Below, one piece after another: positions 1 through 37,142 of a stretch of DNA of 64,000 nucleotides. Numbering within the stretch: position 1 is the first letter of the stretch; every line of letters begins with the position of its first letter. Both the position numbers and the translations under genes were made by a program. This DNA is from Gnetum montanum (Eukaryota > Plantae > Gnetophyta), in NCBI GenBank assembly GCA_015680685.1, contig MNCI01001087.1, positions 267,575 through 331,574 on the forward strand, in the 5' to 3' direction. The notes below the pieces were generated by a model. It was not told where the DNA came from. It searched no databases and saw only the letters and a list, made by a program, of their open reading frames with translations.

Positions 1-786
1 CCTCATTGTGCGCAAGCTATACTCGCGCTACACTCACGCTGCAGCGTGACATCAATGTGACCTCAACGTGAGTGAGCTAGAATGATGGATTTTTTACCAA
101 ATTTTGATTTTTGAAGCCTGATTGTTAAAGTGTGAGGATTTCCTAACTATGATTGACCTTGAAAATAATTTGAAAATTAGAAATTGAGTCTGTTGTGCCC
201 TATTTTGTACCACCTTTGGAAGCTCAAGCTAGACTCACACTGCCAGCGTGAGTGCAGCATGACCAAAGCATGAGCTGCAGCGTGACCACAGTGTGAGCTA
301 CAAAAACCTGCATTTTTGAACCTGATAGAGGCTAGAATTTAGATCTTGTCGATGATGAACCCTGAAGATGATTTGCACGTTGGAGATCAGATCTTTTTTG
401 ACTCAGTTTTGGGCTTTGAAAGTTGCTCCCGCTGCACTCACGCTGCTAGCGTGACCTCAGCGTGAGTGGCAGCGTGAGGGAGGAAATCTACACCTTTTGA
501 CATCAAAATTTCAATCTCTGAATGCTGAAGCTTGGAGTTGACATCAATGGCCCTTGAGGATGGCTTGCACCTTTGAAATCGAACCATTTCGACTCAGTTT
601 CGAGGCTCCTAGAGTTGCTCACGCTGCACTCACGTTGCCAGCATGACCTTAGCGTGACCACAACGTGAGTGCCCAGGACAAGCCAGCGTGAGTCTCATGC
701 CTTAGTCAAATTTTGCTTCCAAAAAGCCAAAAGGGCTCTGGTTTCTTCTTATTGCAAAGTCCTAGGTTGAAATTAGTGGTGTTTCA
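1..786 (-). repeat. 3' LTR of element A (partial)
   Basis: Direct repeat of ~18882-19617. Both copies end ...aaattagtggtgtttca on + (TGAAACACC start on -). Confidence 0.95.
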
Positions 787-800
787 TTGGCCCCTCTTTG
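787..800 (-). promoter_or_regulatory. Polypurine tract of element A
   Basis: Minus strand reads CAAAGAGGGGCCAA immediately before the TG of the 3' LTR. Confidence 0.85.
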
Positions 801-2029
801 TTGACATCTGGAGGAATCCACCTGAGAGGCGTCGACAAAGAAGTGCAAAACACCATGAACAACCAAGTACCAAGCATTATCCGTCGACTCTTGGATGGAT
901 GTCATCGCACCATTTTTAGAAGTACATGGGATTGAGAAAATGTAATTCAAGATGTAAGGGGATTGATTGTGACCGGGGGAAGTTAGGAGTTGATCAAGGA
1001 TCATGATTGCTGTTGGAATTGTGAGATAGAAATGCTCTCACCTGAATAAGCTATATCATTGGTCCTTGTCAATAGCTGGTTCTCAGTAGACTCGGAGCCA
1101 AGACATAGGAGGTGCGTTCTTTGGAGAAATGGGACTCTTATAGAGTGTTTACAGGGCCTGTTGTAAATAGCCAAAGCCATGCAATGATGTGCAACATGGT
1201 CTCTTTGAGAAGCGAGTGTAACTGTTTTCCAAGAAAATTACCTTCTCACCTAGGGCTTGTATTAGAATGGCCAATAGTCTTTGGTTTATGATGTCAATGG
1301 GGTCATGAAGACCTTTTCTGTGCATTTTGCACTTTGACCTTTTTGTTTCTTTTTTCTTTTTCCTGTTTTTATCTTTTCTTTTTGTTTTTGTTTTCTTTTT
1401 GATATTTTCTGTTCTATTTTCTTTTCTTTGTTCTCTTTGGTCTTGTTGAAAGAGCTTACTTTTAGTGTTGTGCTCATGCTCAAGCACTTGAATTTTGTAT
1501 CATGTACTCTGTACTGTGTTTTGCATTGCAACTTCTTAGAGAGATCACAATGTACAACAATGTATCAAGAGCTTTGGGGGAGTAGAATGTATCCAGGGGG
1601 TATAATTAAATAAGACAAAGGGAACATGATGGGGAATAGGGAATGTATCAGGAGTCAGGAATGTACTTATGAACGGATTGATTAACCCAGTTGCGGGTGT
1701 TAGGAAGAATGTGATACTCTATCGTCATGATGAGGTGCATCTGTGAATGAATGCCTCAAGCGTGTCATCATGCAAACACAACTCTAAGAAGACAAGAAAA
1801 CCACAAATGAAACGGTTAACTAAGCACTTTAAACTTGAAAACAACCAAGGAGATAGAGCGACCATGTGCAATTTTAAAGCAGGTGGAATCATGAACAACA
1901 TCAGCTTTGTCAGAGTCCATGAGACAAGTTATGCAGCAAGTCTTGGTGGAACATGTACAACCAATTGCAACAACACATCCTTTTGCCTGGTTGTCGATGA
2001 TGTCATCAATTTATAGTCTTAGCAAACTA

Positions 2030-2560
2030 TTGCAGGTTAGTTTCATGTCATAACCCTTTAGACGGTGCTAGTTTAGCATCGTAGCAGACGGTGCGTTGCT
2101 AGTTTATAGTCGTAGTGGACTGTGAAGAGGCAAACTAGTTTATAGTGGACTCTGGATGCTAGTTTCATGTCATGGCAAACATATGTGGTAGTTTAGTGTC
2201 ATACCGAATAGAACTCTATGATGTCAATTTACTATGGTGACTCCAGGACTTTCTGTGGTGCCAGTTTCAAGTTGTGGCCCTAGGACCGTTCTATGGTATC
2301 AGTTTTAAGTCATGATGCCAGGACATTCTATGGTATTAGTTTTAAGTCATGATTCCAGGATTATTCTATGGTATCAATTTTAAATCATGATGCCAAGACC
2401 GTTCTGTGGTATCAATTTTAAGTCATGATGTTAGGACATTCTCTGGTATCAGTTTTAAGTCATGATGCTAGGACCGTTATGTGGTATCAGTTTTAAGTCA
2501 TGATGCCAGGACATTCTGTGGTATCAATTTTAAGTCATGATGCCAGGACCATTATGTACC
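2030..2560. repeat. Tandem array (~37-38 bp unit, ggtatcagttttaagtcatgatgccaggacattctgt) downstream of INT in A
   Basis: About 7 well-conserved units at ~2295-2555 and more degenerate units to the left. Tandem arrays 3' of pol are typical of Tat elements. Confidence 0.9.
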
Positions 2561-2574
2561 TTAGTTTGATCAAA

Positions 2575-3760
2575 CATAGTACCATTTCAAGTACAGATGA
2601 TTTGTGGGGTTAGCAAACTCATTCCCATCCATGTCAACAAGTTTGAATGCTTCGTTATTGTATGCCTTGGTGACTAAGTAAGGCCCTTCCCAGTTGGCTA
2701 AGAATTTTTCTGGATGTTCATGAATGGCCTTAAGGACTAAATCTCCTTCTTTAATTAGGCATTTATACAGGTCTTCTTTGTGTTATTTTCATTGTTGTTT
2801 CTAGTACCACTCGATCTGATCAAGCATTCGCACACATTCCTCCTCAACTAAGTCGAGGTCAGTTTTGCGCAATTCATTACTTTCACTTTCATTGAGGAGA
2901 CCTGAGAGAGCTATCCGCAATGAGGAAACCTATAACTCTAATGGAAAAACAACTTTAGACCCATATACAAGACTATATGGAGTTTTACCTATAGAGGTTC
3001 GATGTGTCATTCTGTGTGCCCACAATGTGTAGACTAATTATTTGTGCCATCATTTCTTTCTCTGATTCAACATCTTTTTGAGCACCATGATGACAATTTT
3101 GTTTGTAGCCTCTGCTTAACCATTGCTCTATGGGTAGTAAGGTGATGAGAATGCATGTTTAATACTCAGGCTTTCATAGAACCTTTTAGTGTCTGCACTG
3201 CTAAACTGTCGCCCATTGTCAATAACGATGGTCATCAGAATACCAAAATGGATCATGATATTTTCTATTATGAAATTGCAAACATGCTTAGAAGCGGTCT
3301 TCCTAAGGGGAATAGCTTCTACCCATTTTGTGAAGTATTTAGTTGCAATCATAATAAAGCTATGTCCTGTAGAGGATGATGGCGTTATTGGTCCAATTAA
3401 TTCTAATCCCCATTTTTGGAATGGCCATGTGATTTGTGTTGTGTGCAATTCGTTAGGTGGCACGTGTATTAGATTACTATGCCTTTGGCAAATGTCACAT
3501 GTTCTGACCTTGGAGATGCAATCGTACTCCATGTGTGGCCAATAGTAGCCTAAGTGCCTAATCTTTGTTGCCATTGCTTTAGGTGCTATGTGCCCTCCAC
3601 AAAGTTCTTCGTGGACTTATTCTATGATGGTTTGACCATTGATGCCACTAATGCACATCAGCAGAATGTCTTCGTAGCATTTGCGACATAAGGCATCTCC
3701 TATTAATGCGTATTACCGAGAGCGCTTTCGCACAGTGTCCTTTTGAGCATTTGTCAAGTG
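2575..3760 (-). pseudogene. Integrase (HHCC zinc finger, rve core, GPY/F tail) of element A
   Basis: GYYWP...CDICQRH, WPFQKWGLELIGP, YFTKWVEAIPL, IVIDNGRQF, SSPYYP and NWEGPYLV-like motifs, with internal stops. Confidence 0.93.
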
Positions 3761-3919
3761 TTGTGGAGGTTCTCCTCTTAGAAGGTACTCTTTTATGTCA
3801 TCGTACCATTCTATTGCGTGTGTTGTGCTAACAGATGCTATAGGCATTTCATCAAGAGTGTTAATTATAGGTTCGACAGAGTTTGTTATTGAGTTAGGCA
3901 ACGCATGGAACATTTCGGG

Positions 3920-4310
3920 TGTCATGTTTAAGGCAAGTGTAGCAAGTGCATCGGAAATAGTGTTTTCACTCCTAGGGACATGTTGTATATCCACTTCTAC
4001 TAGTTGTCTCAACAGATGTTTGGTCAAATCACAATAAGGTTACAAATGGAGAGCTTTGTGTGCATAAATCTCAGTGACTTCATTAATGACTAGCTGTGAA
4101 TCACCTCGAACTACAAGACGTGAGATTCCCTAAGTTAATGCTGCTTGAAGACCTCTAAGAAGACCTTTGTATTCTGCCACATTATTGGTACAAGGAAAGG
4201 TCAATCGGTAGGCAAAGGGTTGGATTTCTCCATAGGGGTATATTAACATGGTCGTAGCACTTCCTCCTTGGGAAGTTGAAGCTCCATCAAAATAGAGGAT
4301 TGCCTCATAG
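3920..4310 (-). pseudogene. Additional archaeal-type RNase H (aRH) of element A
   Basis: LYFDGAS...TNNVAEY...GDSQLVI...HVPRSENTISDALA. Lies between RH and INT, which is diagnostic of the Tat clade. Confidence 0.92.
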
Positions 4311-4379
4311 TTTTTGGGTATGGTTTCTATACTGTTAACATTCTCATCTCGGAATTCAGGGTTTATCGTTGCTTGATCG

Positions 4380-6046
4380 TGCGTTGGCGAGACAGTTAAT
4401 TGCATGACTATTGCTTGACCTTTGGAGGAAGATTAAGCAACATAGTGTAGGTTAAACTCTACAATCATTGCTTTCCACCTAGCTATCCTACTCGACTCAT
4501 AGATGTTATTAGTGATGGAACAAAGTACATTATCCCTACAAATGATGTAAACTTGATTACGAAAGAGATAATGCCTCTATTTCTTCAAAGAGAAGACGAG
4601 GGCAAGGCATGATTTGTCTACATCGTTGTATCGTTGTTCATAGGCAATTAAAGCATGGCTTAGGTAATATACAGGGATCTTGACTCCATCTTGAGGTTTT
4701 TGACAAAGCATCGATGCAATGGAAGAATCAAAAGTTGCAAGGTAAATGTAAAAGGTTTTATTATCTTGTGGGGGATAAATGGTCGGCAGCTGAGCTAACT
4801 CTTGTTTTATGTTCTCGAACACTTCTTGGCATTGTTGAGTCCATTGGAAATGTACATTCTTTCGTAATAGGTGTTGCATGGGTCTCAACTTATCCATCAG
4901 CCTTTCGATAAAGCATATAATAAATTGCAACCTACCTTGAAGGCCACATAATTCTGTGAGCTTTTTTGGTGGTTTCATGTTAGTTATTGCCTTAACCTTA
5001 TCAAGGTCTATCCGTATTCCTATTTTAGAGACTACAAAACTAAGCATTTTCCCCTTTTTGACACCAAAGACACATTTCTTTGGATTGAGTCTAAGGTCAT
5101 ATTTGAGACAACGTTTAAGCACTAGGTCTAGAACGTTTACATGTTGTTTGGTGGTTTTAGATTTAACCGCGATATTGCCAACGTAATCATTGAGCAAATT
5201 GAGCATGTAATCACTAAATATCTATGTCATTGCTTGTTGATATGTTGCTCTTACATTTTTAAGGCCAAATGGCATCATTGTATACCAGAAAATGCCCCAA
5301 GGTGTCATAAAAGTTGTTCTAAGTTTATGTTTCGGATTGATTCTTATTTGGTTGTATCCTGAAAATCCATCCATAAAGGATAATAGTGCATGCCCAGCGG
5401 TTGTGTCAATAAGTTGATCGATGCTGGGTAGCAGGAAGTCATCCTTTATAGTGGTTGTGTTAAGATCACGGAAGTCAATGCATATGCGTATACTACCATT
5501 GTTCTTAGGAACTACAACAATGTTTGATACCCAATAGGAATAGTCAACGGCCTGGATGAAACCGACTTGGTAGAGCTTTGTGATTTCAACATGGACTGCT
5601 AAAGCTACTTCAGGTCTAACTTTTCGTGATTTTTGTTTCACCGTTTTAATTTTTTCATCAAGGATAATATTGTGTTGGACAACTCAGGGATCTAGTCCTG
5701 GCATGTCGATATATGACCATGCAAATATATTTATGTTGTCTTTCAGTACTTGAGTGATGTCATTGACAAGTTGTGAGTCTAATAGGGTGCTTAATTTCAA
5801 CATTCTAGCTTTGCCATTGAATGTAGTAATGCAGATTTCAACTAGAGGATCTTCAGTGATATTATCAGCTTCTAGATCCAAAGTCTTAGTCACATTTTTA
5901 GACCAATCTGATGTTTCTTGAGTGGAGGCTATTAAATTAGCATAGGTGGATGGGTCTAGATCCAAGGATTCTGGATTGCTTGCTCTTTTTACCTCCCCGT
6001 ATGGTCCACTGAGAGACAGTGTTGAAAGGATATTCTTGGTTGCCAT
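4380..6046 (-). pseudogene. Reverse transcriptase and degenerate RNase H of element A; the reading frame opens at its own ATG (6046)
   Basis: IFAWSY.DMPGLDP, WVSNIVVVPK.NGSIRICIDFRDLN, SFMDGFSGYNQI, MPFGLKN, LNPKKCVFGV and PVYYLS motifs. The YVDD box has decayed to YVGN. Confidence 0.95.
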
Positions 6047-6169
6047 GTGCTTGCTCCTACCAATTTAAACCAAGAGCGAAGAGACACCCACTTGATGAAA
6101 GAGTCACTAAATGTAAATGAACACAAGGAATTTTAATATGTACTAACAAAATTGGGAGACGCAGTGGTA

Positions 6170-6285
6170 GTCATGGCAGTTTTAGGCAGTGCCGGGCCAC
6201 ATGGCAATTTAAGGCCATACCGGGTTGCATGGCAGTTCAAGGACATACCGGGCTGCATGGTGGTTTAAAGCCATACCAGGCCAGA
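6170..6285. repeat. Short tandem array (~29 bp, catggcagtttaaggccataccgggc) between the RT start and the cargo gene
   Basis: Four visible imperfect units. Confidence 0.8.
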
Positions 6286-7544
6286 TAATATTCACGTTGA
6301 CTTATCATTTGGATTGAGTGCATAGAGCATTTTTTATTTTAAAATTTTGTGCGAACAATAAGTTTATGAGACTTTAAAATTTTATGAATTTTTGAAATGT
6401 TTATGTGTATGTATATATATATTTTTTTTGTTTTTAACTTTTCATCCCTTCCTTTGCATAATAATAACTTTCTTTGGCCTCATCTCCAGAGGCTGGAATG
6501 ATGAGGGATATAGGCCAACATAAAACAAAGATGATATAAATGAGAACAAAAAATTAAACGTGGTAAAATTTAAATAAATAAAATAAGAGAAAATAAAATA
6601 GAATGTTTTGGATTTAAAAGGGGGTTTTGAAATGAAGGGAGGGGTATTTTGTGCTAGCATGAGTTTGTGGACTGTAGCGTGAGCTAGGAGTGCAGCATGA
6701 GCAAGGTGACATGAAGGATAAGGGTAGAGGAAAGGCGAGTCGAGACAAAGGGAAGAGGTAGGCAGATCTAGCATTCATGGAGGAGAGAGAAGAACTTCTC
6801 CAGCGTCTCCCCCAAGCCAAGATTCCAACGTGGGATGGGTCCTTGCACAGGTAGATTTGTTTTTTCTTACTTTTCTCCACATTTTTATGGACAGCGTTAC
6901 CTAGGGTAGAATTTCTGTGGCTGTGATTTTCTTTATTTTTGTGGCATTTGGCATGAGTGCTTAGGGCGTGAATGCGCGCTTTGAGCGTGAGTGTCTAGGG
7001 CGTGAATGCGTGGTTGGATTTTCAAGCTTTCTTAGGCGTCCTGGTTTTTTGGCAATGTGAGTGCTAGGAGAAGAGAAAGGCGGTGTGAGTGCAGGCTTAG
7101 CAGCGTCAATTTTTTCTTTTGCAACATCAATGTATGATAATCCATTATTGACTACATCTTCAGAAACATTTGCTGCAAACAAGGGTTCCAGGGCAGGGCA
7201 ACGTGAACCACAAATTTTCAGGCTTTTAGGGCTTCTTGGGCCACAGGGTTTTCATCTTTTTCGAGCATCCTCGACTGCAGGGTTTCTTAGACTTCTTGAG
7301 TGTCCTGGGCCACAGGGTTTCTCAGCCTTCTTGGGCTTTAGGCCAAGACACGGCTAGCGTGAATGTGGGTGATGAAAGTGGAAAAGTGAGTGTAGGCCAA
7401 GAAGGCCTACGTTACAGGGAAGCCCTATTCTTTTTGGCAACGTGAGTTGTGTTGTAGGAAGGCATGTTCTTCTATGTTTTGTGTTGGCAACGTGATTGCC
7501 AGCTTTCTTGGGCAAAGTGAGCACAAGATAAGATTTCTATGGGG

Positions 7545-7652
7545 ATAGGCATCTTGGGTTCCAGGGAGATAGGCACTGTTGGTTCCAAGGAGATAGGCAT
7601 CATGGGTTTCAGGGAGATAGGCACCATGGGTTCCAAGGAGATAGGCACCATG
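7545..7652. repeat. 24-bp tandem repeat (ggagataggcaccatgggttcca) in intron 1 of the cargo gene
   Basis: About 4.5 units. Produces the spurious (PMVPISLE)n ORF. Confidence 0.85.
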
Positions 7653-8558
7653 GGTGGTTGGAACAGGTCTTGATCCCTGCAACGTGAGTTGCTGGTTCCC
7701 AACGTGAGCTGGAATGTAGAGGACCAAGCATGAGTGTTGGGGAGGCAGAATGATTTTTTCTGAACAATCCTAGCATGAGCGCTCCCAGCATGAGTCATTC
7801 GGCAATAGGTCCCAGCGTGAGCCCTCCCAACGTGAGTTTTTTTTTTTTGGAAAACTATAGCTTGAGTTTGCTGGGAAAGGCCATAGTGTGAGTTGATGCT
7901 AGAGCAGTTCCCAACATGCGTTAAAAATGTGAAGACGTGCATTGTTTACTAGGATGCCTATAAATTGCTTGTTGTTTACTAGGATCATGTTTATACTATT
8001 TACTGTTTTCCTTAAGACGAATGATTTAAACCTTGATTCAATGAGTGTTTATGTTCTGCCCTTCTGTGTGGATTTATTGTGAAATGGGTTTCAATGTATC
8101 CCAGTGAGCATCAGATACACTAAATAGATATTGGTGTCCTTGTCTCATGGGGTGAAGCTATGCATTCAAAGTATTTGTTTATGTGATTTTCAGTTTATGT
8201 GATTTTGACCTATTGTTAGCACTTAGATTCTTCACTTACCTAATGTCTTAGCTGTATGCAGGGGACCTAAATCTTCTCTTCTCATCGTTGAGCTTGTTGG
8301 CTTACTTGCTTGGTCCGGCCCCTTTGGACCAGACACACCTCCCTATGATATGCGCATCGGGCCCCATGTGATATGGTTCCACCCTAGTGTTAGTTCATTT
8401 TTTCATTTATCCTGCAAAATTTTAGTGTGGTTATATGGTCTTACCTAAGTGAACAGTTGGCTCGTGATGTTATTGAGACCATGTTGGCTGGGTCTACACG
8501 AAGCATGCTTGCCTTTGTTACCGACATAGATGAGGGGCTTTATAGAGTTGAGGGAGGC

Positions 8559-10564
8559 CCTGCTGAGGGTCCTAGATCTACACGTCCCTTGACTCGTGTG
8601 TGGGAGCTGCCCACTTGTACTCATTACAATAGTAGCAAAACACTTTTCTTAGCCTTCCATGTGCACACTCTATTTCAAAACCCACTTGGGACAGTATATA
8701 AAGTGGACAGGTATGCATTCTTGTGTCTTACTTTAATTTTGATTCCTTTTTCAATTTTGTGTCATCATCTAAATGTTGTTTTCCTATGCAAGCCTCATTT
8801 TGATGAAAATGGGATGTGTGATAATAATGGTGGGCTTGCCTTAGCATGCACAGCACTAGAGACATTCATGGCAGTCCCCATTCTTCGTGTCGTGGTACTG
8901 AACCAGATAAAAGTGGCTATTATTGACTACCATAGGAAGTTCTTGAGAGATTTTGAATGCTGCCAAGTTCGTGGTTGGTTACATAAGGATTTGTCTTCTA
9001 ATGCCCCAATTTTTCCTCAAAGGTTTGATCTTGCACCCACCCCACCTACACCATTCATAGATGATAAGTGACCGCACTCTAGACTCCATTTTCTTTTGCT
9101 ACATCATCATGTATCATGTTCTTTTTCTAACTCTTCACTCTATGTTTTTCTTTTTACAATAGTAATCCCCCTGAAGAAGTTACCATTATAATAGGGCGTA
9201 CTGAGACCACACTTTTTACGAAGTATGGGGAGGTAGAGCAATCACAAAAATGGTTGCAGAAGAAAGCTTTTGATTTGATCATCAACCGCCTTACTAGGGC
9301 AGGTTTGATGGACTTGTTTACAACTTTGACTCCTAGCGTTTCGGCTACTNNNNNNNNNNNNNNNNNNNNNNNNNNNNNNNNNNNNNNNNNNNNNNNNNNN
9401 NNNNNNNNNNNNNNNNNNNNNNNNNNNNNNNNNNNNNNNNNNNNNNNNNNNNNNNNNNNNNNNNNNNNNNNNNNNNNNNNNNNNNNNNNNNNNNNNNNNN
9501 NNNNNNNNNNNNNNNNNNNNNNNNNNNNNNNNNNNNNNNNNNNNNNNNNNNNNNNNNNNNNNNNNNNNNNNNNNNNNNNNNNNNNNNNNNNNNNNNNNNN
9601 NNNNNNNNNNNNNNNNNNNNNNNNNNNNNNNNNNNNNNNNNNNNNNNNNNNNNNNNNNNNNNNNNNNNNNNNNNNNNNNNNNNNNNNNNNNNNNNNNNNN
9701 NNNNNNNNNNNNNNNNNNNNNNNNNNNNNNNNNNNNNNNNNNNNNNNNNNNNNNNNNNNNNNNNNNNNNNNNNCCTGCTGAGGGTCCTAGATCTACACGT
9801 CCCTTGACTCGTGTGTGGGAGCTGCCCACTTGTACTCATTACAATAGTAGCAAAACACTTTTCTTAGCCTTCCATGTGCACACTCTATTTCAAAACCCAC
9901 TTGGGACAGTATATAAAGTGGACAGGTATGCATTCTTGTGTCTTACTTTAATTTTGATTCCTTTTTCAATTTTGTGTCATCATCTAAATGTTGTTTTCCT
10001 ATGCAAGCCTCATTTTGATGAAAATGGGATGTGTGATAATAATGGTGGGCTTGCCTTAGCATGCACAGCACTAGAGACATTCATGGCAGTCCCCATTCTT
10101 CGTGTCGTGGTACTGAACCAGATAAAAGTGGCTATTATTGACTACCATAGGAAGTTCTTGAGAGATTTTGAATGCTGCCAAGTTCGTGGTTGGTTACATA
10201 AGGATTTGTCTTCTAATGCCCCAATTTTTCCTCAAAGGTTTGATCTTGCACCCACCCCACCTACACCATTCATAGATGATAAGTGACCGCACTCTAGACT
10301 CCATTTTCTTTTGCTACATCATCATGTATCATGTTCTTTTTCTAACTCTTCACTCTATGTTTTTCTTTTTACAATAGTAATCCCCCTGAAGAAGTTACCA
10401 TTATAATAGGGCGTACTGAGACCACACTTTTTACGAAGTATGGGGAGGTAGAGCAATCACAAAAATGGTTGCAGAAGAAAGCTTTTGATTTGATCATCAA
10501 CCGCCTTACTAGGGCAGGTTTGATGGACTTGTTTACAACTTTGACTCCTAGCGTTTCGGCTACT
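8559..10564. other. Scaffold gap (N 9350-9773) flanked by an exact 791-bp duplication (8559-9349 = 9774-10564); probable assembly artefact
   Basis: Identical sequence on both sides of the N run at an offset of 1215. Confidence 0.9.
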
Positions 10565-13500
10565 GAGATGGTCACTATTGTTGATTCTTTCAGTGGTGAT
10601 GCTTCCCATTTTAACACACTAGTTCGAGAAGTCAAGGTATCTTTCCACTTGACCACTAAGTTTATTTCTGATCTTTTTTGTGTGCCCATAGATGGTGTCA
10701 TGGTGACCGTAGATAAAGCAACTAAAGACAAACAGGTCATAAGAGAGCTTGAGCAGTGGTTAGGCATGTCTCGGGGTCCTAAGGACTTTGCTATGCGAGA
10801 TGATACCTAATCAATGGAGATGAACTTCTTGTATCCTCTCTTCTGGGCACGAGCCTTTCCCAAATCTCTTTCTCAAGGAAGAAGCCTTGGGATCAAGTCC
10901 ACACGTGTGATACGTGCAGTTTTAGAGACGAGCATGCGCTATAACTGGGCACAGTTTCTTGGATCTAGTTTCCATGGAGAGATTGTTAGGTTACATTCAA
11001 ACATCCACACCAAATCCCATTTTACATTTGCTTTCTTCACAGGGTATCTACGTAGGTTTGTTGAATTCTTAGTAGTTTATGGTGATAGCCACTATATTTG
11101 GAGGGATCGTTCATAATTGTTCCACCCTTAGATTCGCCATTTGTATAGCACTAATAGATCCTAGGATCTACCAGAAGACATTGAGGAATCAGTATCAGTC
11201 ACTACTGGGGGTGCGGCTAGTCGTTCCCATCATTCCCATGATTGCTTAGGATTGGAATCGCCTAACCTGTGCACATCTGCTAAAAGGGCTGAACGTTTGA
11301 TTGGTGAGACTGTTAGGAAGTTTAAAGCACAGGTGAAGAGGAAAGAACGCCCAAGGGAGCCTGCTCCAGTTGTGATGCCACCAAGATCAAAGAAGATTCG
11401 ATTTGTACTACCAGTGGAGGGTAAGTAGTTTATTTTATTGTTACATATTTATTTTTATTGTGTTTTGGTTTATATGTTATTAAAAGTACATATATACTAT
11501 GTGATACTAACTCTAGGATTCTAGTGTTATTCAAAGGAAAGTCCTGAGAGGGAGAGAGAGGTCATGGCCCCGATAGTTGAACCAAAAGCAGTCACCACAG
11601 GACCTGAGGAGAAAGGAAAAGAAGGGGAAGAAGTAATCGAGGAACCTCTTGCTCCGCAAGAGGAAGATGTGACAAGCATCGTAGGGATGAAGCTTGCGGA
11701 GGCCTTGGATGCACTTAGGCATTCAAGTGATGAAAGAGATGTCCTTGATGGTTTCTTTGATGGATCTTTGCAACTTGGTGATCCACCCAGGCTAAACAAC
11801 GAAGGAATTTTTGGTATGTTCCCTTTAGCCTAATCCATATTCTGTGTCCTTTAATTTTCATGTGTTATTCTTAATTATCTTGGTTATCTTTAGCATCATA
11901 GGTAGATGCTGAAATTTTTGAGGCACATATATCTTGGGAAGCGGCGTCAAGATCACATGTCCCGGTTGAAGAGACCTCCCTTGCTTGTCCCACATCAACT
12001 GAATAGCTGAGACCATGCCTTGAAATTCCTAGCAAAATAAATTTTTTTAAGAGCATCGTTCATGATGTGGTCACTCACCTATGAGAAGCTCATCCAGAAA
12101 TAGGTATGCTAAGTATCTCATTTTTTATTTTTGTTTCTTTACGTTCATTATTGATTATGGCTTATTCATGTGTGCAGTACTTACACCTATAGGCGCTAAG
12201 CTCCAGTAGGATCCTTCTGAAGCCACTCATATTAATGCTCTCCCTGAATTGCCAGGGAATATTGGGCAAGTCCCTAGGAAGTTTTACGATGTAGTTTCTA
12301 GTTGCATTGTACAGAACAGCAAATTGCTTTGGACTTGTAGGCATTCGGTTGAATATCTATAGGAAGAGGTCCACTCATTGAAGGAAGCACTAGCAAAGGA
12401 GAGAGAGAAGAAAAGGGATCTCCAATCTCATTACGATCTTGCTGCTGCTAGGCTATCCGGTGATAGCACTTGGCGCACATCTAAAATCACCTATGCATGT
12501 TACTAGATGGTTTTGAATAGAAAAATGTAGGTGACACGGGACTAGTAGAACAAAGAGCACAGATGGACTTGCTAAACAGAAAATGTCATGATTGGAAGTC
12601 CTTCGTTGCAAAAGTACGAAAATGGAGCCAAGACCAAAAGAACCACAAGCATCAGTATAAGAAATGGTTAAAGGAGGAGTTAATTGAACATCACCAGATG
12701 GAGATGTTCATCGATGGGTTAGGCTTGCGATCTGCTTATGACAGGTTCGCTGAGTGCATCGAGGTGGAGGGATCTCTAGAGAGAACCATTACTACCGCCT
12801 CTAAGGAGGCTTCAACTGGCATGTTCTCTCTTGAGCGTCCTACCTGGACTTCAGTGGACAAGGGGAAAACCTTGGCTGGTATTGATCTTAGCCTGGAGGA
12901 GGATTGGGAAAACGTGCCTGAGGAGGAGATTCTATGGCATTTGGAGGCCAACTTAGGGCCTTCCTCACTTGTGAGTGTTTTATTGTGACATTTATTTTTG
13001 TATGGTTTTATCATTTTCATTGTTAGTGTTACTGTTTTTCTAAGTTTTGCATTTATGATTTTTTTTACTGGTATTACTTGTTTTTATTTTTATTTTTTCC
13101 TATAGGGACATGTTAATGATGGAGCTGGCCCCAGTGGAGCGAGAGCGGATGATGAAGAGGATCTTGGGGACCAGCCCCCTTCATGAGCTTAGTGTCAATC
13201 AAACTTTGGCCATTAAATGTTTTTGGATTTTTGGATGTTTAATGGAAACATATGGTTGACAAATGTAATAATATGGACCTAATTATGGCATAACCTGTTG
13301 GAATTTTACTACCATGTTGACGTATCATTTTTTTTTATTTTGTGTGTTTTCTCTTTTTATTTGTTTTTTTCAAGTATTATCGTGAACATATGCATGTAGC
13401 TAAATGTAAAATGGGGGAACAAGACATAAATCAACACTTGTAAAAGAAGAAAGTAACGAGAAGGCATAGATCGCGATTGCAACTTATATCATTTAAATGA

Positions 13501-13808
13501 AAATTTGACATAACATAGTGAATGTTTGTAAACTTGTAACGTATTGAACCCTAGTTTAAAGCCATTTTGGGCTATGCAAATTAGTTTAAAGTCATGGTGG
13601 ATTGTCGTATTTTTTGTCAAAAAAAGAAGGATTACCAGTTTTATGCCATAGTGGGCCAAAAGCAATAACAATTTAAGGAAACTTTTAAACGGAACCAGCC
13701 ACTTCTGACCATGGCTAGTTTAACATCATTGTGGACGTTCACTGGTAGTTTTACATCATACTGGATGATTGGTAGTTTAACGTCGTTTCAAACATTTAGT
13801 GGTTCACT

Positions 13809-16800
13809 CTAGTTATTGAGTTGCCTCTTAATCTTTTGTAGCTTAACGTGAGGGGTAGGGCATGCACACATGATCTTATACTCACCATCCCCTTCACTAG
13901 TGATGTCAAAGGGTAACTCCGACCAAGAGACATCAGTGGGAATGGCTCCTATGTTTGTGTTGTCTGGTGTTTCCTTAGTTTCAGTAGGGTTGTAAGTTAA
14001 CATTGGGTTCATGTTTTGAGGTATGCTCATAGTTCCTTGCTTAGGCTCAACCAACTCAATTTTTTACTCTTGATCTACCTCAGGGTATGAGGAAGTGAGC
14101 AATACTATTGTATCCCCACATATGATGATTTCACCGTCCTCATAAGGTAGGTGGATCTCCTGATGGATTGGTGAGGATACGGCTCTAAGTTGAGCTAGCC
14201 AGCGATGTCCTAGAATCAAGTTAAACCCTAGCATTTCATCAACTACTATGAATTCAGCTGATGTGGGGAATTGGTCCCCAGCTATGAAATCTAAGGTAAC
14301 CATACCTTTCACTCTAACATGGGAACCACTGAAGGATTTTAGGAAAGAAGTTGTCGTGGGCTGTATTTGTTCAGTGAGTCCCAATTTTTCGATGATGGGA
14401 AAAGGTATTACGTTTGTTGCCCCACCATCATCGACATGGACCCTACATATCTTGAAATGATTGACTTGTATCATTATGAATATACGGGCTGTGATGACTT
14501 CTCCTATTTTCTCATATAGTTTAATTTCCTTAGCATAAAACTCTAAGGAGATAGTCTTTGATTCCTAAGGTTGCAGGGACAATACTACATAAATAGACGG
14601 CTCATCTGCAAGAAGGTCCTCACTAACAAGGATCGAAGTCAGCATCTGTATGAGAGCTTCCCGATGTATAATTGAAGTCATTACTAGATCATACAGGCTT
14701 AAAGAAGTATTCTTTTGTTTCAAGGCTTGTGTGACTTGAGTTAATGCACTCGCTAAATCTTTACCATTTGGGCCACCCTTATCTGTAGAGACTTGGTCTA
14801 GTTGAGCCAGCATTCGTATCTCCTGTGGAGGGATTTTTGTGTTGGTAATTGAGGATGCTGGGTTTGGGACACAACCCGTGACATTATCCTCATTTTGATG
14901 ACTCGTACTAGGCTCATTAATGGGCGTACCCATAGGAACAATGTTTAGCGGTGTGGGCTTTGCCGGTCTTAATTCATGCTTATGGTTTTCTCTTTCCAGG
15001 CACTCTCTTGTTAGCCTATCGGCAAAATGTTCTCGCAAAGGTCATGGGGGAATGGAGGTGGGTTGTGTGTCAAGGTGTTTTGGCACCCGGATAACAAAGG
15101 GAATGGGTCAGTTTTTAGATGATGTGGTTGTTGCTACAATAGAAGGAGGTACACGGATGATGAATGGTTTTTGTGGTATAGGGAATGTACGTATGATGAA
15201 AGGGGTTTGAGGAGATGTTAGGGTAGGTGTGTTTTCTGAAGGCTTGCGAATCACAAAAGGTTTTTGCAGGACATCCTATCTATTCTCCACATGGATAGTA
15301 TTAATCACATATGATGCATCATTAGTATTGAGAGGATCCTTGTAGAATCCCATGGATTGGTTTTGGGGTCTTAATAGATTTCCCTCATCGAATACTACTC
15401 CACCCCTATCAATCATGTGTTGTATATCTTGTTTCAAGATGAAACAGTAATCAATCCCATGACCACACCATTGGTGATATTCCCGAAACCTATCCAACCT
15501 AAAGCCTCTTGGAACAGGGGGCTCATTAGCTGTTGCTAGAGCTAGGTTCTTGGCCAACTCACAAAATCGACCATGTTTTTGAGAGGCCACAGGAGACATT
15601 TTTTTATGTTGGATTAGCCCGGCCTTTAGAAGTTGATCAGCAATTGTGAAGGCTTCATAGGCAAGGGTGTATATTGAGCAGGGTCTTTTCTTTCGAATGT
15701 ACGGGCATGACCCATGTTGGTGTTTTTATTTGATAAAGGTTCAGGTGTAGGCATAGGTGTGTTTCTTTCGTGGCCGTTTGGGGTGGCAGTTTGTTTTCCC
15801 TTTTGTCTGAGATGGTTAGGTCAGGCTGTCTCTGCTATCGCCGCTACCGTTGTTTTGGATTTATCCTTCCTTGTATGTTGGCTCCTAAAGGTCGAGTAAG
15901 CTGGCTCATTACTTGTTTGTGCCACTTCCTCTATGTCCTTAATTTTCACAAATGCTTGGCTCAAGGTATGGGCTTTCAAATAATAGAGTCTTAACTTAAT
16001 AAAGTCATTCATAGCTACCTTATAGATGGTAAGCAGATATGTTTTAGGGATAGGCTTGTGAAGTTCATTTAGGGTTACACTCCACCTTTGGATAAATTTC
16101 TATGCTGGCTCTAACGGTGCTTGTTTAATATGGATCAAGTTATCCAATGTGGCTTCAGGTTTTAAATTATACTTGAAACAGGTGACAAATTGGTGCAACA
16201 AGTCCTCTAGAGAAGATATGAAGCTACGGGGTAGAGCTCAATACCAGTCTAAGGCCTTTCTGGCTAAGGAGATAACAAACACTTGCAGAATTACATGAGG
16301 CCATGCCTGAAGCAATAGGCATTCTATTCGAAATGTCACTAGGTGAGCATTTGGGTCTCCCTCTTCATTGTACTTGGTTAGCTGGGGTAACGAGACTCCC
16401 TTTGGCAAGGTTAATGGTGGAATTGAAGGGTCGATTAGATCATCTTAATAAAAGTCCAATACCTTGACTTCCTTCATGTTTACAGTTTTGAGACGCTTTA
16501 ATTCTTCTGCTAACGAATGCATCATTTTCTTCATGTCTGCCCACTCTTGAGCGGTAGGCAGATCGGTGGGTTGAGTTGGTGGCAACTCATAATGATTCGA
16601 TTGTTGCATTGTTTGTGGAAAGAGAGATTGTTGGACTATCATTTGTTGCGGTGGGATGACATTTGGGGCTAAGAAAATGGGGTGTGGTATGCTATAGTGA
16701 GTAGACAGGGTTTTCTAAACAACTGGTGGTACCCACTACCCAGCCATAGGTTGTGAAGTCACTCCCTGAACATCTTGGGTTGAAGTAATCAATGGTGACA

Positions 16801-17212
16801 TGTGGATTTGCACTTGAGGTATGTAATGGGAGGACGTGAAAGCTAGTATGACCGATGGCATCCTAATCACTTGAGGCCGAAAGGTCGATCTTGCGTTAGT
16901 TTGGGGAGGGAGTTTTTGGGACTGTACTTGTGGAGGTATGATGGAAGTGGATGCATCAGAGTGAATATTGAGCATGGAGAAGATGGGAATGGAAGCAAGT
17001 ACCTCTTGTCAGGAAACTGGTGATCCAATGTTTGCATATGAAGGGGGAAGCACAGTTTCTTCCAGAAAAGGGTGGAATAATGAGCTTGTATGGGCATGGA
17101 GGCTAATGGTATGGTATGAATCCCCATGTTTAGATTGGGCTGCGAAGTCATCTTCCTCATCTCCATTCTGAGGCTCTATTGGAGGTAGTTGTAAGGCTTG
17201 ACTTCTTGCCAT
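13809..17212 (-). pseudogene. gag-protease ORF of element A
   Basis: Retrotransposon gag region (KYNEEGDPNAHLV-like, YHQWCGHGIDYCFILKQDIQHMID). Aspartic protease RVHVDDGGATNVI...FNLILGHRWL. Ends KIKRQLNN*. Confidence 0.9.
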
Positions 17213-17910
17213 GAGAAGCTAGGATATGCATTTATGATGGTGTTCAAACAGCGGGATTATATCAAATGCTGAAGGGATAATTTCATAGTCTCACTTCACT
17301 TCCCTCTCTACACAATCGATAGGTAAGCTGGCTTGGATCTTAACACAGATGAAGTTATACTATTCAGGTGTAAGAGTTGCATAAGTAGGGTTTTTTCCCT
17401 GTAGCCTAAGTGACTAGCGCATAGGGCCTTGGGGGTTTATCTGTTCAATAACAGTTATGGGTTCTGTGGCAGTCACAAGGTTTGAGGTTTCAGCTCCAAA
17501 GTTAGAGGTCGGAAATGTCACAGGGTTAACTTGGGAGGATTCAATAGTGAGTGTAAGTAAACTGGGCTGGACGACTTGAGTGTGAGACTCTACATCGTGA
17601 GTAGCTACAGCGTGAGTAAGCTGACAGATAGCGTGAGCAAATACAGCATGAGTACTACAGCATGAGCAAGCTAACAAATAATGTGAGTGACTGATAGCGT
17701 GAATACTATAGCATGAGTAGCTATAGCATGAACAAGCTGATAGACAACATGAGTGACTGACAACGTGAATAGCTAAGAACAAGGTGGGTAAGTCAAGCCG
17801 TGCGTGTGCATGCTAGCTTGACAAGCTGAGCTTTAGTTTTAGCACTTCGTCTGTGTACTGTTTGGATAGGTAGTATGATCTACGTTTTGGTAGACGATAA
17901 ACAACTCTGG

Positions 17911-17926
17911 CCTCCTTCTAGCGCCA
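17911..17926 (-). promoter_or_regulatory. Primer binding site of A, complementary to the 3' end of tRNA-Asn
   Basis: Minus strand TGGCGCTAGAAGGAGG, 6 nt after the LTR end (…TACA). Matches the plant tRNA-Asn(GUU) 3' end CCTCCTTCTAGCG-CCA as recalled. Confidence 0.85.
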
Positions 17927-17932
17927 ATTTAC

Positions 17933-19617
17933 TGTACTAACCTAAATCGTCAGTGTACGGCTGGAAGGGAAAACAAACACCGAAAGATCATTGGGCACAC
18001 ACAGCTAACCTTGCCTTCGCCCAAGGGCAAGCTAGAAAAGAAAATGAAGATAGAGTGCCTTAGATGATCTACATGCAAATCAACCAAGGACTTCCCCGAG
18101 CGTGAACTATGACCTGTGCTGGGGTTATCGTAACTGATGTTTGAAACGTAAACAGTGTGCACGAAATGTAAACAAAAACGTATGCAGAATTGGTATTGTA
18201 AACATAATGTAAATTGAACGTAAAACATAGCAAACAATATAATGGCTGGCAAAATTAACTGTATTGTATTGCTTAGAAATGATGTGTACCAATCAAAGTG
18301 TATTTGCACATGTGGATGGAAAGTCAAGCACCAAGCCCTAGGACAATGTGATGTGTTTCAGGAGTGCTTGGATGCTAGGAGTCAGGTGTGTCCGAGCACC
18401 CAAGGATTGCTGGTCTGAGTTTCCTAAGCCATCTGCCTTTAAAATTGCCTACCTTGTTTATGTGAATTTATAGGGTATTTATAGGGTTTGGCTAGGCTCA
18501 GGTGTAGAATTCATGGGTTGAATCAACGGTTGAGAGATGAGAGAAAAATGGATCTAGTGACACATGTTCGATAGACAGCTTTGTATGAGTTGGATGTGTG
18601 TGGGCAAGCTATGTTTTCGACCAAGGGCCTTGTATCTTACAACGTGTGATAACTTACTCAAGCTAGCTTATGCTCATGGAAACACATACAATTCAGAGTG
18701 TAAGAGCCTGACAAACTCACAAATGATGAAAATTTACAGTGAAATTAACTCTGGCTTGCTTGAAACTTATAGATCTTTGAATTGACCGTTGTAGGATATT
18801 AATTTGAGTGGTTCTGTGGCTGTTTCAGGTGTCTTCGCCTGACAAGAACTTCCAACGTGAGTTGCTTTTTCCTTAGCATGTCCTCACCATGCGCATGCTA
18901 TACTCACGCTACACTCATGCTACAGCGTGACCTCAACTTGACCTCAGCGTGAGTGAGCTAGAATTATGGATTTTTCACCAAATTTTGATTTTTGAAGCTT
19001 GATTCTTGAAGTGTGAGGATTTCCTAACTGTGATTGACCTTGAAAATGATCTTAAAATCAAAAATTAAGTTTGATGTGCCCTATTTTTTACCACCTTTGG
19101 TAGCTCACGCTGGACTCACACTACTAGCATGAGCTGTAGCGTGACCACAGCGTGAGCTGCGAAAACCTATAATTTTGAACCTAATAGAGGCTGGAACTTG
19201 GATCTTATCGATGATGAACCCTAAAGATGATTTGCACATTAGAGATCAAATCTTTTTTAACTTAGTTTTGGGCTTTGAAAGTTGCTCACGCTGCACTCAC
19301 ACTGCCAGTGTGAGTGAGTGACAGCGTGAGTGAGAAAATCTGCACCTTTTAACACCAAAATTTCAATCTCTGAATGCTGAAGCTTGGACTTGACATCAGT
19401 GGCCCTTGAGGATGGCCTTTGAAATCGAACCATTTCGACTCAGTTTCAACGCTCCTAAAGTTGCTCACACTGCACTCATGCTGCCAATGTGACCTTAGTG
19501 TGCCCAGGACAAGCCAGCGTGAGTGTCATGCCTTAGTCAAATTTTGCTTCCAAAAAGCCAAAAGGGATCTGGGTTGTTCTTATTTCAAAGTGTTAGGCCA
19601 AAATTAGTGGTGTTTCA
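17933..19617 (-). repeat. 5' LTR of element A (~1,685 bp)
   Basis: TG...CA termini, adjacent to the PBS, right part repeated at 1-786. Flank gtacc (19618-19622) is the expected TSD. Confidence 0.92.
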
Positions 19618-25685: not shown

Positions 25686-27715
25686 GTCCCATATGTCCTC
25701 CACACACAATCTCATGAACTTGCTCAAGGACTATTCTAGCTTCGGTTCTAACAAAGCATACTAACAACATGCCATCATAGGATCATTGACATAATATGTT
25801 ATCATCTACAATGACATACTATTTTGATCATTTACATATAGTATCCTTTTGAATAATAGTTATGGCTTGTGAAGATTCTCCATGCATAAGGTAGAACTTG
25901 ATATCATCGTACCACTCCTTTATAGGAGTAATATAAACTATGGCCACAAAGTTATCCTTAGCATTCTATGTGATGGGTATAGCACAGTCCATGGTTAAGG
26001 TGGAAAACTTACTAAACACATTTGGTGTTACACTGAGGGCTAGCATCGTGATGGCATTAACTATAGCATTTTTGTTTCAAGATATATGTTGGATATCAAC
26101 ATTTATAAATTATTGTAATAATTGCTTCCCTAAGTCACAATAAGACTGTAAATGTTTAATTTTGCATCCGTAAAGCTTGGTTGCTTAGTTGACCATGGGT
26201 TGTGAATTGTCCTTGATCATTAAATGCTTAATTCCTAGGTCACAAGATACCTTCATCCCCTTAATCAAATCCTCATACTCTATTATGTAGTTGGTGCATG
26301 GGAACTCAAAACAATAACCAAAGGGTTGGATTTGACTAGACACAAAGGTTATAATGGTAGTAGCACCACCATCATGGGTAATTGATGCTTTGTCAAAGTG
26401 CATGACTACCTCATAATCCTAAAGTATTTGGATAATAGTGTTGACATGTTCATTAAGAAACTTAGGGTCTATGTCTGCATGGTCATCAATAAGCAAAATA
26501 GTAAGTTGTTTGGTTATAGCTTGACCTTTCATTGAGAACTGAGAAATGTAATGAAGGTCAAACTCTACTATTATGGCTTTCCCTTGGGCTCTATGACTAC
26601 TCTCATAAATATTAGTCATTATGACTCTAAGTATGTTGTCTTTGTAAATGACATTGACTTGGCTCCAAAAGAGGTAACATCTCCATTTCTTCAATGAAAA
26701 GGCTGGTGCTAGATAGCACTTCTCGACTTTAATGTATTAGGTTTCATGGGCAAATAGGACATGGCTAACGTAGAATACTAGCATTTATATGGTCCATCAT
26801 TACATTTTTGACAAAGGAAAGAGATAACTAATGTGTCAAAGATAGCAAGGTAGATGTAAAAAGGCTTACCCTCTTATGGAGCATAGACTGTTGATAGTTG
26901 TACCAACTCTTGCTTAAGGTTTTCAAGGACTTCTTGGCATTGAGTTGTCCACCCATAGTAAGCTCCTTTCTTAAGCAAGTGTTGCATGGATTGTAGCTTA
27001 TCCATGAACATAGTAATAAACCTACAGATAAATTATAATCTACCTTGCAATCCCCAAAGCTTCTGAAGGTTAGTTAGCATTGTCAAGTTCGAGATGACCT
27101 TAACTTTATTAGGATTAACACATATCCCTACTTCCAATACTGCAAAGCCAAGCACCTTACTAGTTTTGACATCAAAGACATACTTCTTAGGATTAAGTAT
27201 AAGTTTGAACTTAAGGCATTGTTTAAGCACAAGGTCTAGGTCAATAGCATGGTCACCCATCACTTTAGAGTTAATAACTATATTGCCTACATAATCATTG
27301 AGCAAACCAAACATGTAATCACTAAATATATACATCATGGCTCTTTGGTAGGTTACTCTACATTCTTTAGGCCAAATGGCATCATGGTATAGCAAAAGGT
27401 ACCCTAAGGGGTCATGAAAGTCATGCTAAGTTAGTGTTCTAGGTTGATCCTCATCTGGTTGTATTTCAAAAACCCATCCATAAAGGACAATAAGGCATGT
27501 CTAACCGTAGTATCAATAAATTCATAAATAATAGGCAAAGAAATGTTATCCTTGATGGTTGCCTTATTTACATCTTGGAAATCAATGCAAATTTAAATAC
27601 TCCCATTCTTCTTGGAGACTATCACTATGTTGGATACCCACTTCACGTAGTCATCAACTCTAATGAAACTAGATTGGTAGAGGTTGGTAATTTCATCACG
27701 AACTTTCAAGGCTAA
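25686..27715 (-). pseudogene. RT, RH, aRH and start of INT zinc finger (Tat type), attributed to element C
   Basis: WVSNIVIVSKKNGS, LSFMDGF, MPFG, LNPKKYVF, HFDKAS...TNYIIEY...DNSQ and EQVHEIVCGGHMG, which is cut by the LTR of B. Confidence 0.88.
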
Positions 27716-37100: not shown

Positions 37101-37142
37101 AAGATCTTCTATGTTTTTGGACACCCATCTTTCATACCTTTG

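Follow-up and report, generated by a model that had tools for sequence, protein, structure and literature searches.

The window, a stretch of 64,000 nucleotides of Gnetum montanum DNA, contains two LTR retrotransposons (here A and C) whose coding regions lie on the minus strand and which carry, between their gag-PR and RT regions, a gene on the plus strand (here the cargo gene). The principal features of the two elements are as follows.

1–19620, minus strand: element A, an Ogre/Tat-type LTR retrotransposon; the start of the window truncates its 3' LTR
2573–6046, minus strand: RT-RNase H-integrase frame of A, with its ATG at 6046 (Pfam)
5225–5641, 4580–5206 and 3131–3616, minus strand: RT, RNase H and integrase domains of A, respectively (Pfam)
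13809–16444, minus strand: gag-PR reading frames of A, with a protease-like segment at 14067–14564 and a stop codon at 13809–13811
25831–27718, minus strand: part of the RT-RH-INT region of C, truncated at about 27725 through the insertion of another, nested LTR element (27725–34944)
37209–42099, plus strand: homologue of the cargo gene in C, with no ATG
42554–45031, minus strand: gag-PR of C, found by protein match to A

The LTRs of element A (1–786 and 18882–19617) are 83% identical; the inner LTR end was not located, and the PBS was hence not placed. Pfam matches to RVT_1, RT_RNaseH_2 and rve lie on the minus strand of A in the gypsy order, and a weak candidate for a second, archaeal-type RNase H (3716–4432) lies between RNase H and integrase. 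This candidate consists of sub-threshold matches at 4133–4432 and 3716–4039 (RNase_H, E 0.02; RVT_3, E 0.03 and 0.015), one to the N-terminal and the other to the C-terminal half of the profile. The gag-PR of A gave no match in Pfam, and matches between it and the gag-PR of C show 38–65% amino acid identity. In A, the protease is fused to gag, with the stop at 13809, and pol follows in its own frame past a spacer, with the ATG at 6046. The order is alike in C, where RT extends to 27718, the cargo gene occupies about 37209–42099 and gag-PR begins at 42554; on the far side of the nested insertion, a weak 8-residue motif (35923–35946) was all that could be recognized of the N-terminal part of the RT of C. 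The best explanation of A and C is that they represent two sub-families of Ogre/Tat-type Ty3/gypsy elements that have diverged from each other, each represented by an old copy that is now dead.

A sequence-only reading of this DNA had proposed that a plus-strand gene, opposite in orientation to the element, fills the gag-PR/RT spacer of A. The ends of the flanking frames (13809 and 6046) and the restriction of the A-versus-C protein matches to the plus strand bear this out, although we count nine exons in A where eight had been proposed. The resulting map of the spacer is as follows.

6047–6776, plus strand: region upstream of the cargo gene and its presumed promoter, with a tandem array of four 28-nt units at 6172–6283
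6777–6850, plus strand: exon 1, with the ATG at 6777 and followed by a phase-2 donor
6851–8261, plus strand: intron 1, GT-AG and 1411 nt long, which contains tandem arrays at 6947–7010, 7237–7333 and 7544–7655
8262–8710, plus strand: exon 2, in which the NIF/FCP1-like domain begins
8711–8791, plus strand: intron before exon 3, with a non-AG acceptor in A (8790–8791)
8792–9067, plus strand: exon 3, with the remainder of the NIF-like domain
9350–10564, no strand: assembly gap (N run, 9350–9773) and second copy of a duplicated block (9774–10564), of which only one copy is to be counted
10378–10775, plus strand: exon 4, equal in the single-copy reading to 9163–9349 plus 10565–10775; the intron before it is 10283–10377
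11043–11420, plus strand: exon 5, after a conserved phase-1 intron (10776–11042)
11517–11813, plus strand: exon 6, an acidic region; RNA of relatives is spliced from its donor at 11813
11906–12103, plus strand: exon 7, small, poorly conserved and without an open frame in A
12201–12970, plus strand: exon 8, the C-terminal part, the best conserved and with the highest RNA depth; it contains stops and a frameshift
13106–13186, plus strand: exon 9, with the stop codon at 13184–13186

In total, the gene comprises about eight spliceosomal introns and about 2.9 kb of exon sequence. The segments 8559–9349 and 9774–10564 are 100% identical over 791 bp and flank the N run, and an N run between two copies of one block points either to an error of assembly or to a duplication in place. 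When the block is counted once, A becomes collinear with C, and the gap falls within a 95-nt intron (9068–9162, equivalent to 10283–10377). Spacers in this lineage measure about 5–6.5 kb, that of A being about 6.5 kb in the single-copy reading and 7.76 kb as assembled. (A scan for bacterial promoters and terminators was set aside as irrelevant to a plant gene.)

The sequence-only reading had also placed a homologue of the cargo gene at 37143–42090 in C. The homologue is indeed collinear with that of A between PR and RT, but there is no start at 37143, and its extent is about 37209–42099. No third copy was found within the 64,000-nt window. As had been noted, DNA similarity between the two copies is low (44–65% identity within the matched blocks). 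The introns of C, all on the plus strand, are as follows.

37261–38608: intron 1
39062–39149: intron 2
39423–39608: intron 3
39982–40245: intron 4
undefined start to 40771: intron 5
41015–41136: intron 6
41234–41396: last intron

Comparison of the two sets confirmed that A and C share a first intron of about 1.4 kb (6851–8261 and 37261–38608) that is GT-AG and in phase 2 in both, with the codon split after its second base. A further proposal, made on the eight-exon count, was that introns 1, 2, 3 and 5 agree in position and phase. On our nine-exon count, introns 1, 2 (beginning at 8711 in A and 39062 in C, phase 2), 4 (10776–11042 and 39982–40245, phase 1) and 6 (11814–11905 and 41015–41136, phase 1) correspond at both ends; intron 3 shares its donor (9068 and 39423, phase 2) and intron 5 its acceptor (intron end at 11516 and 40771). 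The intron at 12971–13105 was seen in A only. All splice sites are GT-AG on the plus strand with the exception of one site in each copy. In both copies the introns other than intron 1 contain 44–45% T and 23–24% A on the plus strand, T and A being about equal in exons, and the short introns are accordingly U-rich on the plus strand only.

Protein comparison of the two spacers yielded 11–12 collinear blocks on the plus strand, with E values down to 1e-13, and no match on the minus strand. The plus-strand frame of the cargo gene has a pN of 0.40 and a pS of 0.79, the latter meaning saturation of synonymous sites; the corresponding values of pS and pN are 0.75 and 0.25 for RT-RH-INT and 0.80 and 0.28 for gag-PR. 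Five control frames gave pN/pS ratios of 0.64–1.3 and showed no such asymmetry, a contrast that is inflated by the choice of blocks for their amino acid similarity. By codon position, A and C differ at 0.47, 0.34 and 0.65 of sites. Taken at the level of sequence, these comparisons support the view that the ancestor shared by the two lineages already carried a plus-strand gene, which was then kept under protein-level selection. The proposal of a long-maintained, selected gene thus draws support from the frame-specific constraint and the retained intron sites; both copies, however, are disabled. In particular, the cargo gene of A contains at least nine in-frame stops (including 11114, 11129 and 11162 in exon 5, 11522 in exon 6, and 12207, 12360, 12504 and 12518 in exon 8) and two frameshifts (near 8395, in exon 2, and near 12505–12520), and that of C has 13 or more in-frame stops, two or more frameshifts and an exon 1 without an ATG. 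Both are pseudogenes. Likewise, the predicted junction 11420^11517 is canonical but leads straight to the stop at 11522.

Could the gene have been of no use to the element? Insertion of a host gene, or of a second transposon such as a PMD-bearing MULE, might have happened once in the ancestral PR-RT intron, with neutral carriage from then on. LTR elements are known to capture genes (PMC7264820), an insertion in the spacer, which in Ogre is an intron, would be tolerated (PMC6317226), and the cargo gene has evolved faster than RT or gag-PR (pN of 0.40 versus 0.25–0.28). Retention of protein similarity and of intron positions in the face of saturated synonymous sites is, however, unlike neutral cargo. 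Apart from the assembly duplicate, no direct or inverted repeats flank the cassette, which also has neither TIRs nor LTRs of its own and no TSD-like structure, and no host or transposon homologue was detected in protein databases (with single-exon queries) or in Pfam. We therefore regard neutral carriage as quite improbable.

To follow transcription of the gene we used RNA-seq of Gnetum montanum (oligo-dT runs X15–X17, together with run X12 for strand), with 9774–15700 as the reference stretch. The reads derive from a relative that is 82–90% identical; sense RNA was close to zero in depth over this stretch, and no splicing of it was seen. Summed over X15–X17, depth was about 0.8–44 per bin over the cargo gene (9774–13337) versus 0–4.6 over gag-PR, and it fell to about zero past 13337, near the predicted 3' end. 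Depth was low over the introns 10776–11042 and 11421–11516 and over 11952–12149 (which includes part of the intron 12104–12200), though reads were counted at 82% likeness or above, so that conservation, and not splicing alone, shapes this profile. In each of the three runs X15–X17, 15–23 reads pass from 11813 directly into the homologue of 11906, and sub-threshold split reads join 10278 to 10382/10384. In X12, first mates over 12546–13139 mapped to the minus strand in 79 cases versus 2, a bias indicating that the RNA is plus-strand. These data demonstrate that relatives of the cargo gene are transcribed from the plus strand and spliced. The expressed relative may itself be defective: it lacks 129 nt of conserved exon and seems to read a stop soon after the 11813 junction, in the small exon. 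Of the differences that set A apart from this relative, the 39 with the best support were classified: 11 are synonymous and 28 non-synonymous, as expected under neutrality; the split is uninformative on selection, since it fits neutral decay of the dead copy A.

The RNA variants are homogeneous, almost every read carrying one and the same alternative letter, with a consensus agreement at loose ends of mostly 0.88–1.0, suggesting that one locus is perhaps the source of nearly all the RNA. Such a dominant source, along with the near absence of gag-PR expression and the death of both copies in the window, would suit a scenario in which the RNA comes either from a domesticated host gene or from a single fossil locus, the copies within elements are passengers, and the conservation between A and C records only an ancient functional phase. 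The apparent deletion and stop in the expressed RNA would nevertheless be unexpected for a domesticated gene, and the gene sits at the same place in two diverged element lineages; we consider this scenario unlikely. Still less probable, to the point of being very doubtful, is that the RNA and not the protein is what matters, with antisense transcription regulating the element through dsRNA/siRNA or splicing interference and the reading frame being incidental. Antisense RNA is abundant relative to the sense gag-PR signal, and regulatory antisense RNAs have been discussed for LTR elements (PMC7264820); yet a role of RNA alone leaves unexplained the codon-position asymmetry and the conservation of amino acids in one frame only.

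The reading that we favor, and consider probable as a whole (the assignment of A and C to two Ogre/Tat-type sub-families being part of it), is that the Ogre/Tat spacer houses a selected, transcribed, antisense, multi-intron accessory gene. The spacer would have been enlarged in this lineage to its present size and would now hold the gene on the opposite strand. Plus-strand transcription would begin at the presumed internal promoter (6047–6776), be followed by splicing, and end near 13.2–13.35 kb, giving rise to a protein with a regulatory, non-catalytic role for the element. Because the cargo introns read CT-AC on the genomic RNA of the element, the spliceosome would leave them in place; being antisense, they would stay unspliced before reverse transcription and pass into each daughter copy. 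Only genomic RNA from which the PR-RT spacer had itself been spliced out would lose the cassette as a whole.

In the literature covered here, the accessory ORFs known from Tat elements lie either 5' of gag or in the interval from pol to the 3' LTR, and none has been placed between PR and RT; they include the sense PMD-coiled-coil ORF 5' in Ogre, the antisense PMD ORF 3' in TatIII/TatV, Tr28 in Retand, gene23 in maize Grande and that of rice RIRE2 (PMC4408406, PMC6317226, PMC7264820, PMC11963269). Like these, the cargo gene is borne by the element, conserved across copies and diverged lineages, antisense (as they often are), separately transcribed, as seen in the spliced RNA of relatives, and without a clear cellular homologue. 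It differs from them in its location, its multiple spliceosomal introns and its NIF-like N-terminus, and in having no PMD or Tr28 match. The claim that a gene at this position had gone undescribed agrees with the literature covered here, in which we found none for Tat elements; Steinbauerova et al. 2011 (Genetica) lies outside it, and a prior description there is possible. As cited in PMC6317226, the gag-PR/pol spacer of Ogre is an intron of about 0.27 kb (Neumann 2003, Steinbauerova 2008). In both cases gag-PR and RT-RH-INT occupy separate frames with a spacer that is noncoding on the sense strand, but the far larger spacer of A holds a gene on the other strand. Antisense accessory genes have counterparts among retroviruses, for which antisense promoters are mentioned (PMC7264820).

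Accessory genes of plant LTR elements are poorly understood, and every position so far assigned to them is at an end of the internal region. If an antisense gene in pol is conserved, has kept about eight introns despite reverse transcription and is transcribed to this day, it would show that retrotransposons carry complex genes of cellular type, and that an Ogre-type gag-PR/pol intron can serve as a cargo bay. Annotation of sense ORFs only, or masking of elements, would then miss an entire protein family. HBZ of HTLV-1 is likewise a spliced antisense accessory gene of a retroelement; unlike the cargo gene, it lies outside pol, starting in the 3' LTR, and it has one intron and encodes an unrelated, bZIP protein.

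The protein would begin with an NIF/FCP1-like HAD domain at its N-terminus, continue through a central domain and an acidic linker, and end in a C-terminal part that is conserved. Word-based protein searches with the segments 8394–9068, 12521–12985 and 10346–10807 gave no match, within a length window that excludes full-length kin, and phmmer found nothing at E ≤0.001 for 8394–9068 among 1.84 billion representative proteins. Pfam searches with 28 segments from the plus strands of A and C (E limit of 10 for 20 of them) showed neither PMD (PF10536) nor Transposase_28 (PF04195), although HMMER filters discard very weak matches and the domain is split by an intron. In the ESM Atlas, 10346–10807 had unnamed neighbors only, below 0.9. 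An AlphaFold (AF2) model of 8394–9068 built from a four-row alignment had a pLDDT of 44 and was unusable, and a PDB sequence search with the NIF-like pieces returned nothing. Pfam PF03031 (NIF) matched C at 38715–38951 over profile positions 37–80 with 17.6 bits (cut-off 21.8; E 0.003) and did not match copy A; in the ESM Atlas, however, all 30 named neighbors of an exon of copy A were NIF clusters (0.92–0.93). A conserved block upstream of the NIF match (8269–8313 in A, 38619–38663 in C), aligned by eye with motif I (the catalytic DxDx(T/V) at the start of such domains), contains no DxD in either copy. The N-terminus thus seems to be weakly NIF/FCP1-like, of the HAD type, with the catalytic Asp motif apparently absent.

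These features raise the more tentative possibility, which we hold to be clearly less likely than not, that the element needs a catalytically dead, CTD-phosphatase-like regulator, made from a host-like, multi-intron antisense gene in the gag-PR/pol intron under a promoter of its own that is independent of the LTR, and acting, for example, on RNA polymerase II or on host silencing. On this view, a gene nested in an intron would be passed on by reverse transcription. In Arabidopsis, MAIN/MAIL1 (PMD) act on transposon silencing with a phosphatase-like partner, PP7L (PMC7156037). That pairing of a transposon-derived domain with a phosphatase-like protein resembles the present case conceptually only, since PP7L belongs to the PPP family, the cargo protein is HAD/NIF-like, and PMD was not detected in it. 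A dead NIF/FCP1-like domain would nonetheless provide a concrete candidate for a link between these very abundant elements and host transcription or silencing.

Elements A and C, the two old Ogre/Tat-type LTR retrotransposon copies on the minus strand of the window, carry a real element-borne, spliced, antisense accessory gene (the cargo) in an unusual place, the spacer between protease (PR) and reverse transcriptase (RT). The hosts are laid out as follows.

Host elements
1-786 and 18882-19617, minus: LTRs of A, 83% identical, the 3′ LTR running beyond the window edge
13809-13811, minus: stop of the gag-PR frame of A
6046, minus: start ATG of the RT frame of A
C, minus, order as in A: RT to 27718, nested LTR element 27725-34944, spacer, gag-PR from 42554

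Pfam identified RVT_1, RT_RNaseH_2 and rve on the minus strand of A, and a second RNase H was seen as two sub-threshold pieces between RH and INT. Separate gag-PR and RT frames are of the Ogre/Tat type (PMC4408406, PMC6317226). Sites resembling a donor (13840-13806) and an acceptor (6065-6046), both minus, could possibly serve an Ogre-type sense splice across the spacer.

Our gene model for the cargo of A comprises nine exons (~2.9 kb in total), so that the plus-strand multi-exon gene of the sequence-only reading stands with one exon more than the eight proposed there.

Cargo exons in A, plus strand
6777-6850: exon 1
8262-8710: exon 2
8792-9067: exon 3
10378-10775: exon 4
11043-11420: exon 5
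11517-11813: exon 6
11906-12103: exon 7
12201-12970: exon 8
13106-13186: exon 9

Cargo introns compared between A and C
I1: A 6851-8261, C 37261-38608; phase 2; both ends common
I2: A 8711-8791, C 39062-39149; phase 2; position and phase common, A acceptor AA
I3: A 9068-9162, C 39423-39608; phase 2; donor common
I4: A 10776-11042, C 39982-40245; phase 1; both ends common (267 vs 264 nt)
I5: A 11421-11516, C end 40771; phase 1; acceptor common, C donor degenerate
I6: A 11814-11905, C 41015-41136; phase 1; both ends and acceptor context common

GT-AG is found on the plus strand at every intron site except one per copy, and the proposed junctions 6850^8262, 11420^11517 and 12970^13106 are all canonical. 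The identical intron positions and phases claimed earlier for A and C are borne out at I1, I2, I4 and I6, with only the donor in common at I3 and only the acceptor at I5. Plant introns are usually T-rich and poorer in A. Leaving I1 aside, the cargo introns of either copy contain 44-45% T and 23-24% A when read on the plus strand; in the exons, T roughly equals A. This plant-type composition speaks for transcription in the plus orientation.

The locus in A includes a run of 424 N (9350-9773) bracketed by exact 791-bp duplicates (8559-9349 and 9774-10564), which probably represent an assembly artefact rather than a local duplication. With one duplicate and the gap removed (1215 nt together), A and C blocks keep nearly the same offset on either side of the gap (30358 and 30424), and the sequence of A is therefore continuous in a single-copy reading. 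In that reading the gap lies inside a 95-nt intron (9068-9162, equivalent to 10283-10377) and no exon is interrupted; duplicate and gap enlarge the apparent locus by 1215 nt. Other repeats at the cargo are short tandem arrays only, located upstream of its ATG and within the first intron (in A, 6172-6283, 6947-7010, 7237-7333 and 7544-7655, with units of 28, 34, 35 and 24 nt, respectively); TRF found none in the matching region of C (34900-38650). The possibility that the cargo is a mobile element of its own, with its own terminal repeats, which the sequence-only reading had set against its proposal, was rejected: no direct or inverted repeats flank it.

We compared the six frames of A with the six frames of the remaining window. 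The known element genes gave stronger matches from minus frames, and the PR-RT spacer gave matches from plus-versus-plus only, in particular 11-12 collinear blocks between A and C with 32-56% amino-acid identity (E down to 1e-13). Nucleotide identity in these blocks, which were picked by protein similarity, is 44-65%, with differences by codon position of 0.47, 0.34 and 0.65. Because synonymous sites are saturated, the following proportions yield no dN/dS value.

Nei-Gojobori proportions, A versus C
Cargo, plus frame: pS 0.79, pN 0.40
RT-RH-INT: pS 0.75, pN 0.25
gag-PR: pS 0.80, pN 0.28

In the five other frames, pN/pS of the cargo blocks is 0.64-1.3. This frame- and strand-specific asymmetry shows that the predicted plus-strand cargo protein has been under long purifying selection, with a rate of evolution ~1.5 times that of the proteins of the element itself.

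Neither A nor C retains an open cargo frame. A contains frameshifts near 8395 and 12505-12520, a non-AG acceptor (8790-8791), in-frame stops at 11114, 11129, 11162, 11522, 12207, 12360, 12504 and 12518, with no frame open across exon 7; in C, exon 1 lacks an ATG, and the reading is broken by at least 13 in-frame stops and two or more frameshifts. Such decay fits the age indicated by the 83% LTR identity.

Parts of the stretch are present in ten DNA runs (organism A and four other coded organisms). Four RNA runs with the same species label were mapped on 9774-15700 at ≥82% likeness, and nearly all reads were 82-90% alike to A and therefore come from relatives, not from copy A. In the three oligo-dT runs (X15-X17), summed depth, which at this threshold also tracks conservation, was ~0.8-44 per bin over the cargo (9774-13337) and ~11-44 over exon 8, low in bins holding I4, I5 and I7, ~0 beyond 13337, shortly past the predicted stop, and 0-4.6 over gag-PR; mean depth in X15 was ~14 over the cargo versus ~1.9 over gag-PR. 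The reads bore out plus-strand splicing in relatives, at joints that fall under the tool's reporting threshold: in all three oligo-dT runs, 15-23 reads depart from A exactly at 11813 and continue in sequence matching A at 11906, directly past an AG, at 21 of 30 positions. A further 16 reads enter at 10382 from sequence resembling the end of exon 3, and split reads join 10278 to 10382 or 10384 (two each). Only when read on the plus strand do these joints show GT-AG. In the fourth run (X12), first mates over 12546-13139 lay on the minus strand (79 vs 2), which by usual library conventions indicates plus-strand RNA. (Note that hundreds of thousands of X12 poly-T first mates at the T-rich 13328-13370 are a mapping artefact, not expression.) X12 reads over gag-PR (13536-15700) were few, mostly in plus-strand orientation (~96 vs 17 summed bin depth), and suggest that antisense transcription in some relatives reads on past the 3′ end of the cargo.

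The RNA variants are homogeneous, and one locus may thus dominate the signal. That locus is without 129 nt of conserved exon 4, where A has no splice signals, and, read on in the phase set by the donor at 11813, it meets a stop soon past the junction. Of the 39 best-supported differences that separate A from the expressed RNA, 11 are synonymous and 28 non-synonymous, a split as expected from neutral decay of A. The window thus holds two dead copies, and relatives are transcribed.

The encoded protein may adopt an FCP1/SCP/TIM50-like HAD fold, probably non-catalytic, a prediction that we regard as a reasonable lead. Pfam NIF matched C at 38715-38951 below threshold (E 0.003; 17.6 bits vs a cut-off of 21.8), and, independently, NIF clusters make up all 30 named ESM-Atlas neighbours of A 8394-9068 (0.92-0.93; 181-191 shared features). 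In both copies DxD is absent from the conserved block just upstream of the NIF match, motif correspondence being judged by eye. Searches with single exons found no relatives in protein databases or the PDB, Pfam detected neither PMD nor Transposase_28 in plus-strand segments of A and C, and an AF2 model was useless.

Among the extra ORFs known from the Tat clade, Ogre carries its PMD-coiled-coil ORF in sense orientation 5′ of gag, TatIII and TatV have antisense PMD ORFs at the 3′ end, and Retand has antisense Transposase_28 ORFs; Grande gene23 and the RIRE2 ORF are further examples (PMC4408406, PMC6317226, PMC7264820, PMC11963269). These four papers describe neither a gene between PR and RT nor a multi-intron antisense gene, and the Ogre intron between gag-PR and pol is ~274 bp (PMC6317226). 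A full-text literature search found no other such description; an earlier mention is possible in Steinbauerova et al. 2011. The cargo belongs to the same class as these ORFs but differs by its place between PR and RT, and would represent a new variant within that class, with a putative function.

The element nested in the RT region of C has LTRs at 27725-28666 and 33989-34944 (83% identical), past which the N-terminal RT part of C was not found, save a weak motif at 35923-35946. The window end holds a third gag-PR-like segment (63093-63586, minus) that is kin to A 14073-14564, with no adjoining cargo homologue found within the window. RT- or integrase-like segments of other retrotransposons occur at 20405-22519 (plus), 31301-31588 (minus) and 56857-59040; overall, the window amounts to a nest of LTR elements.
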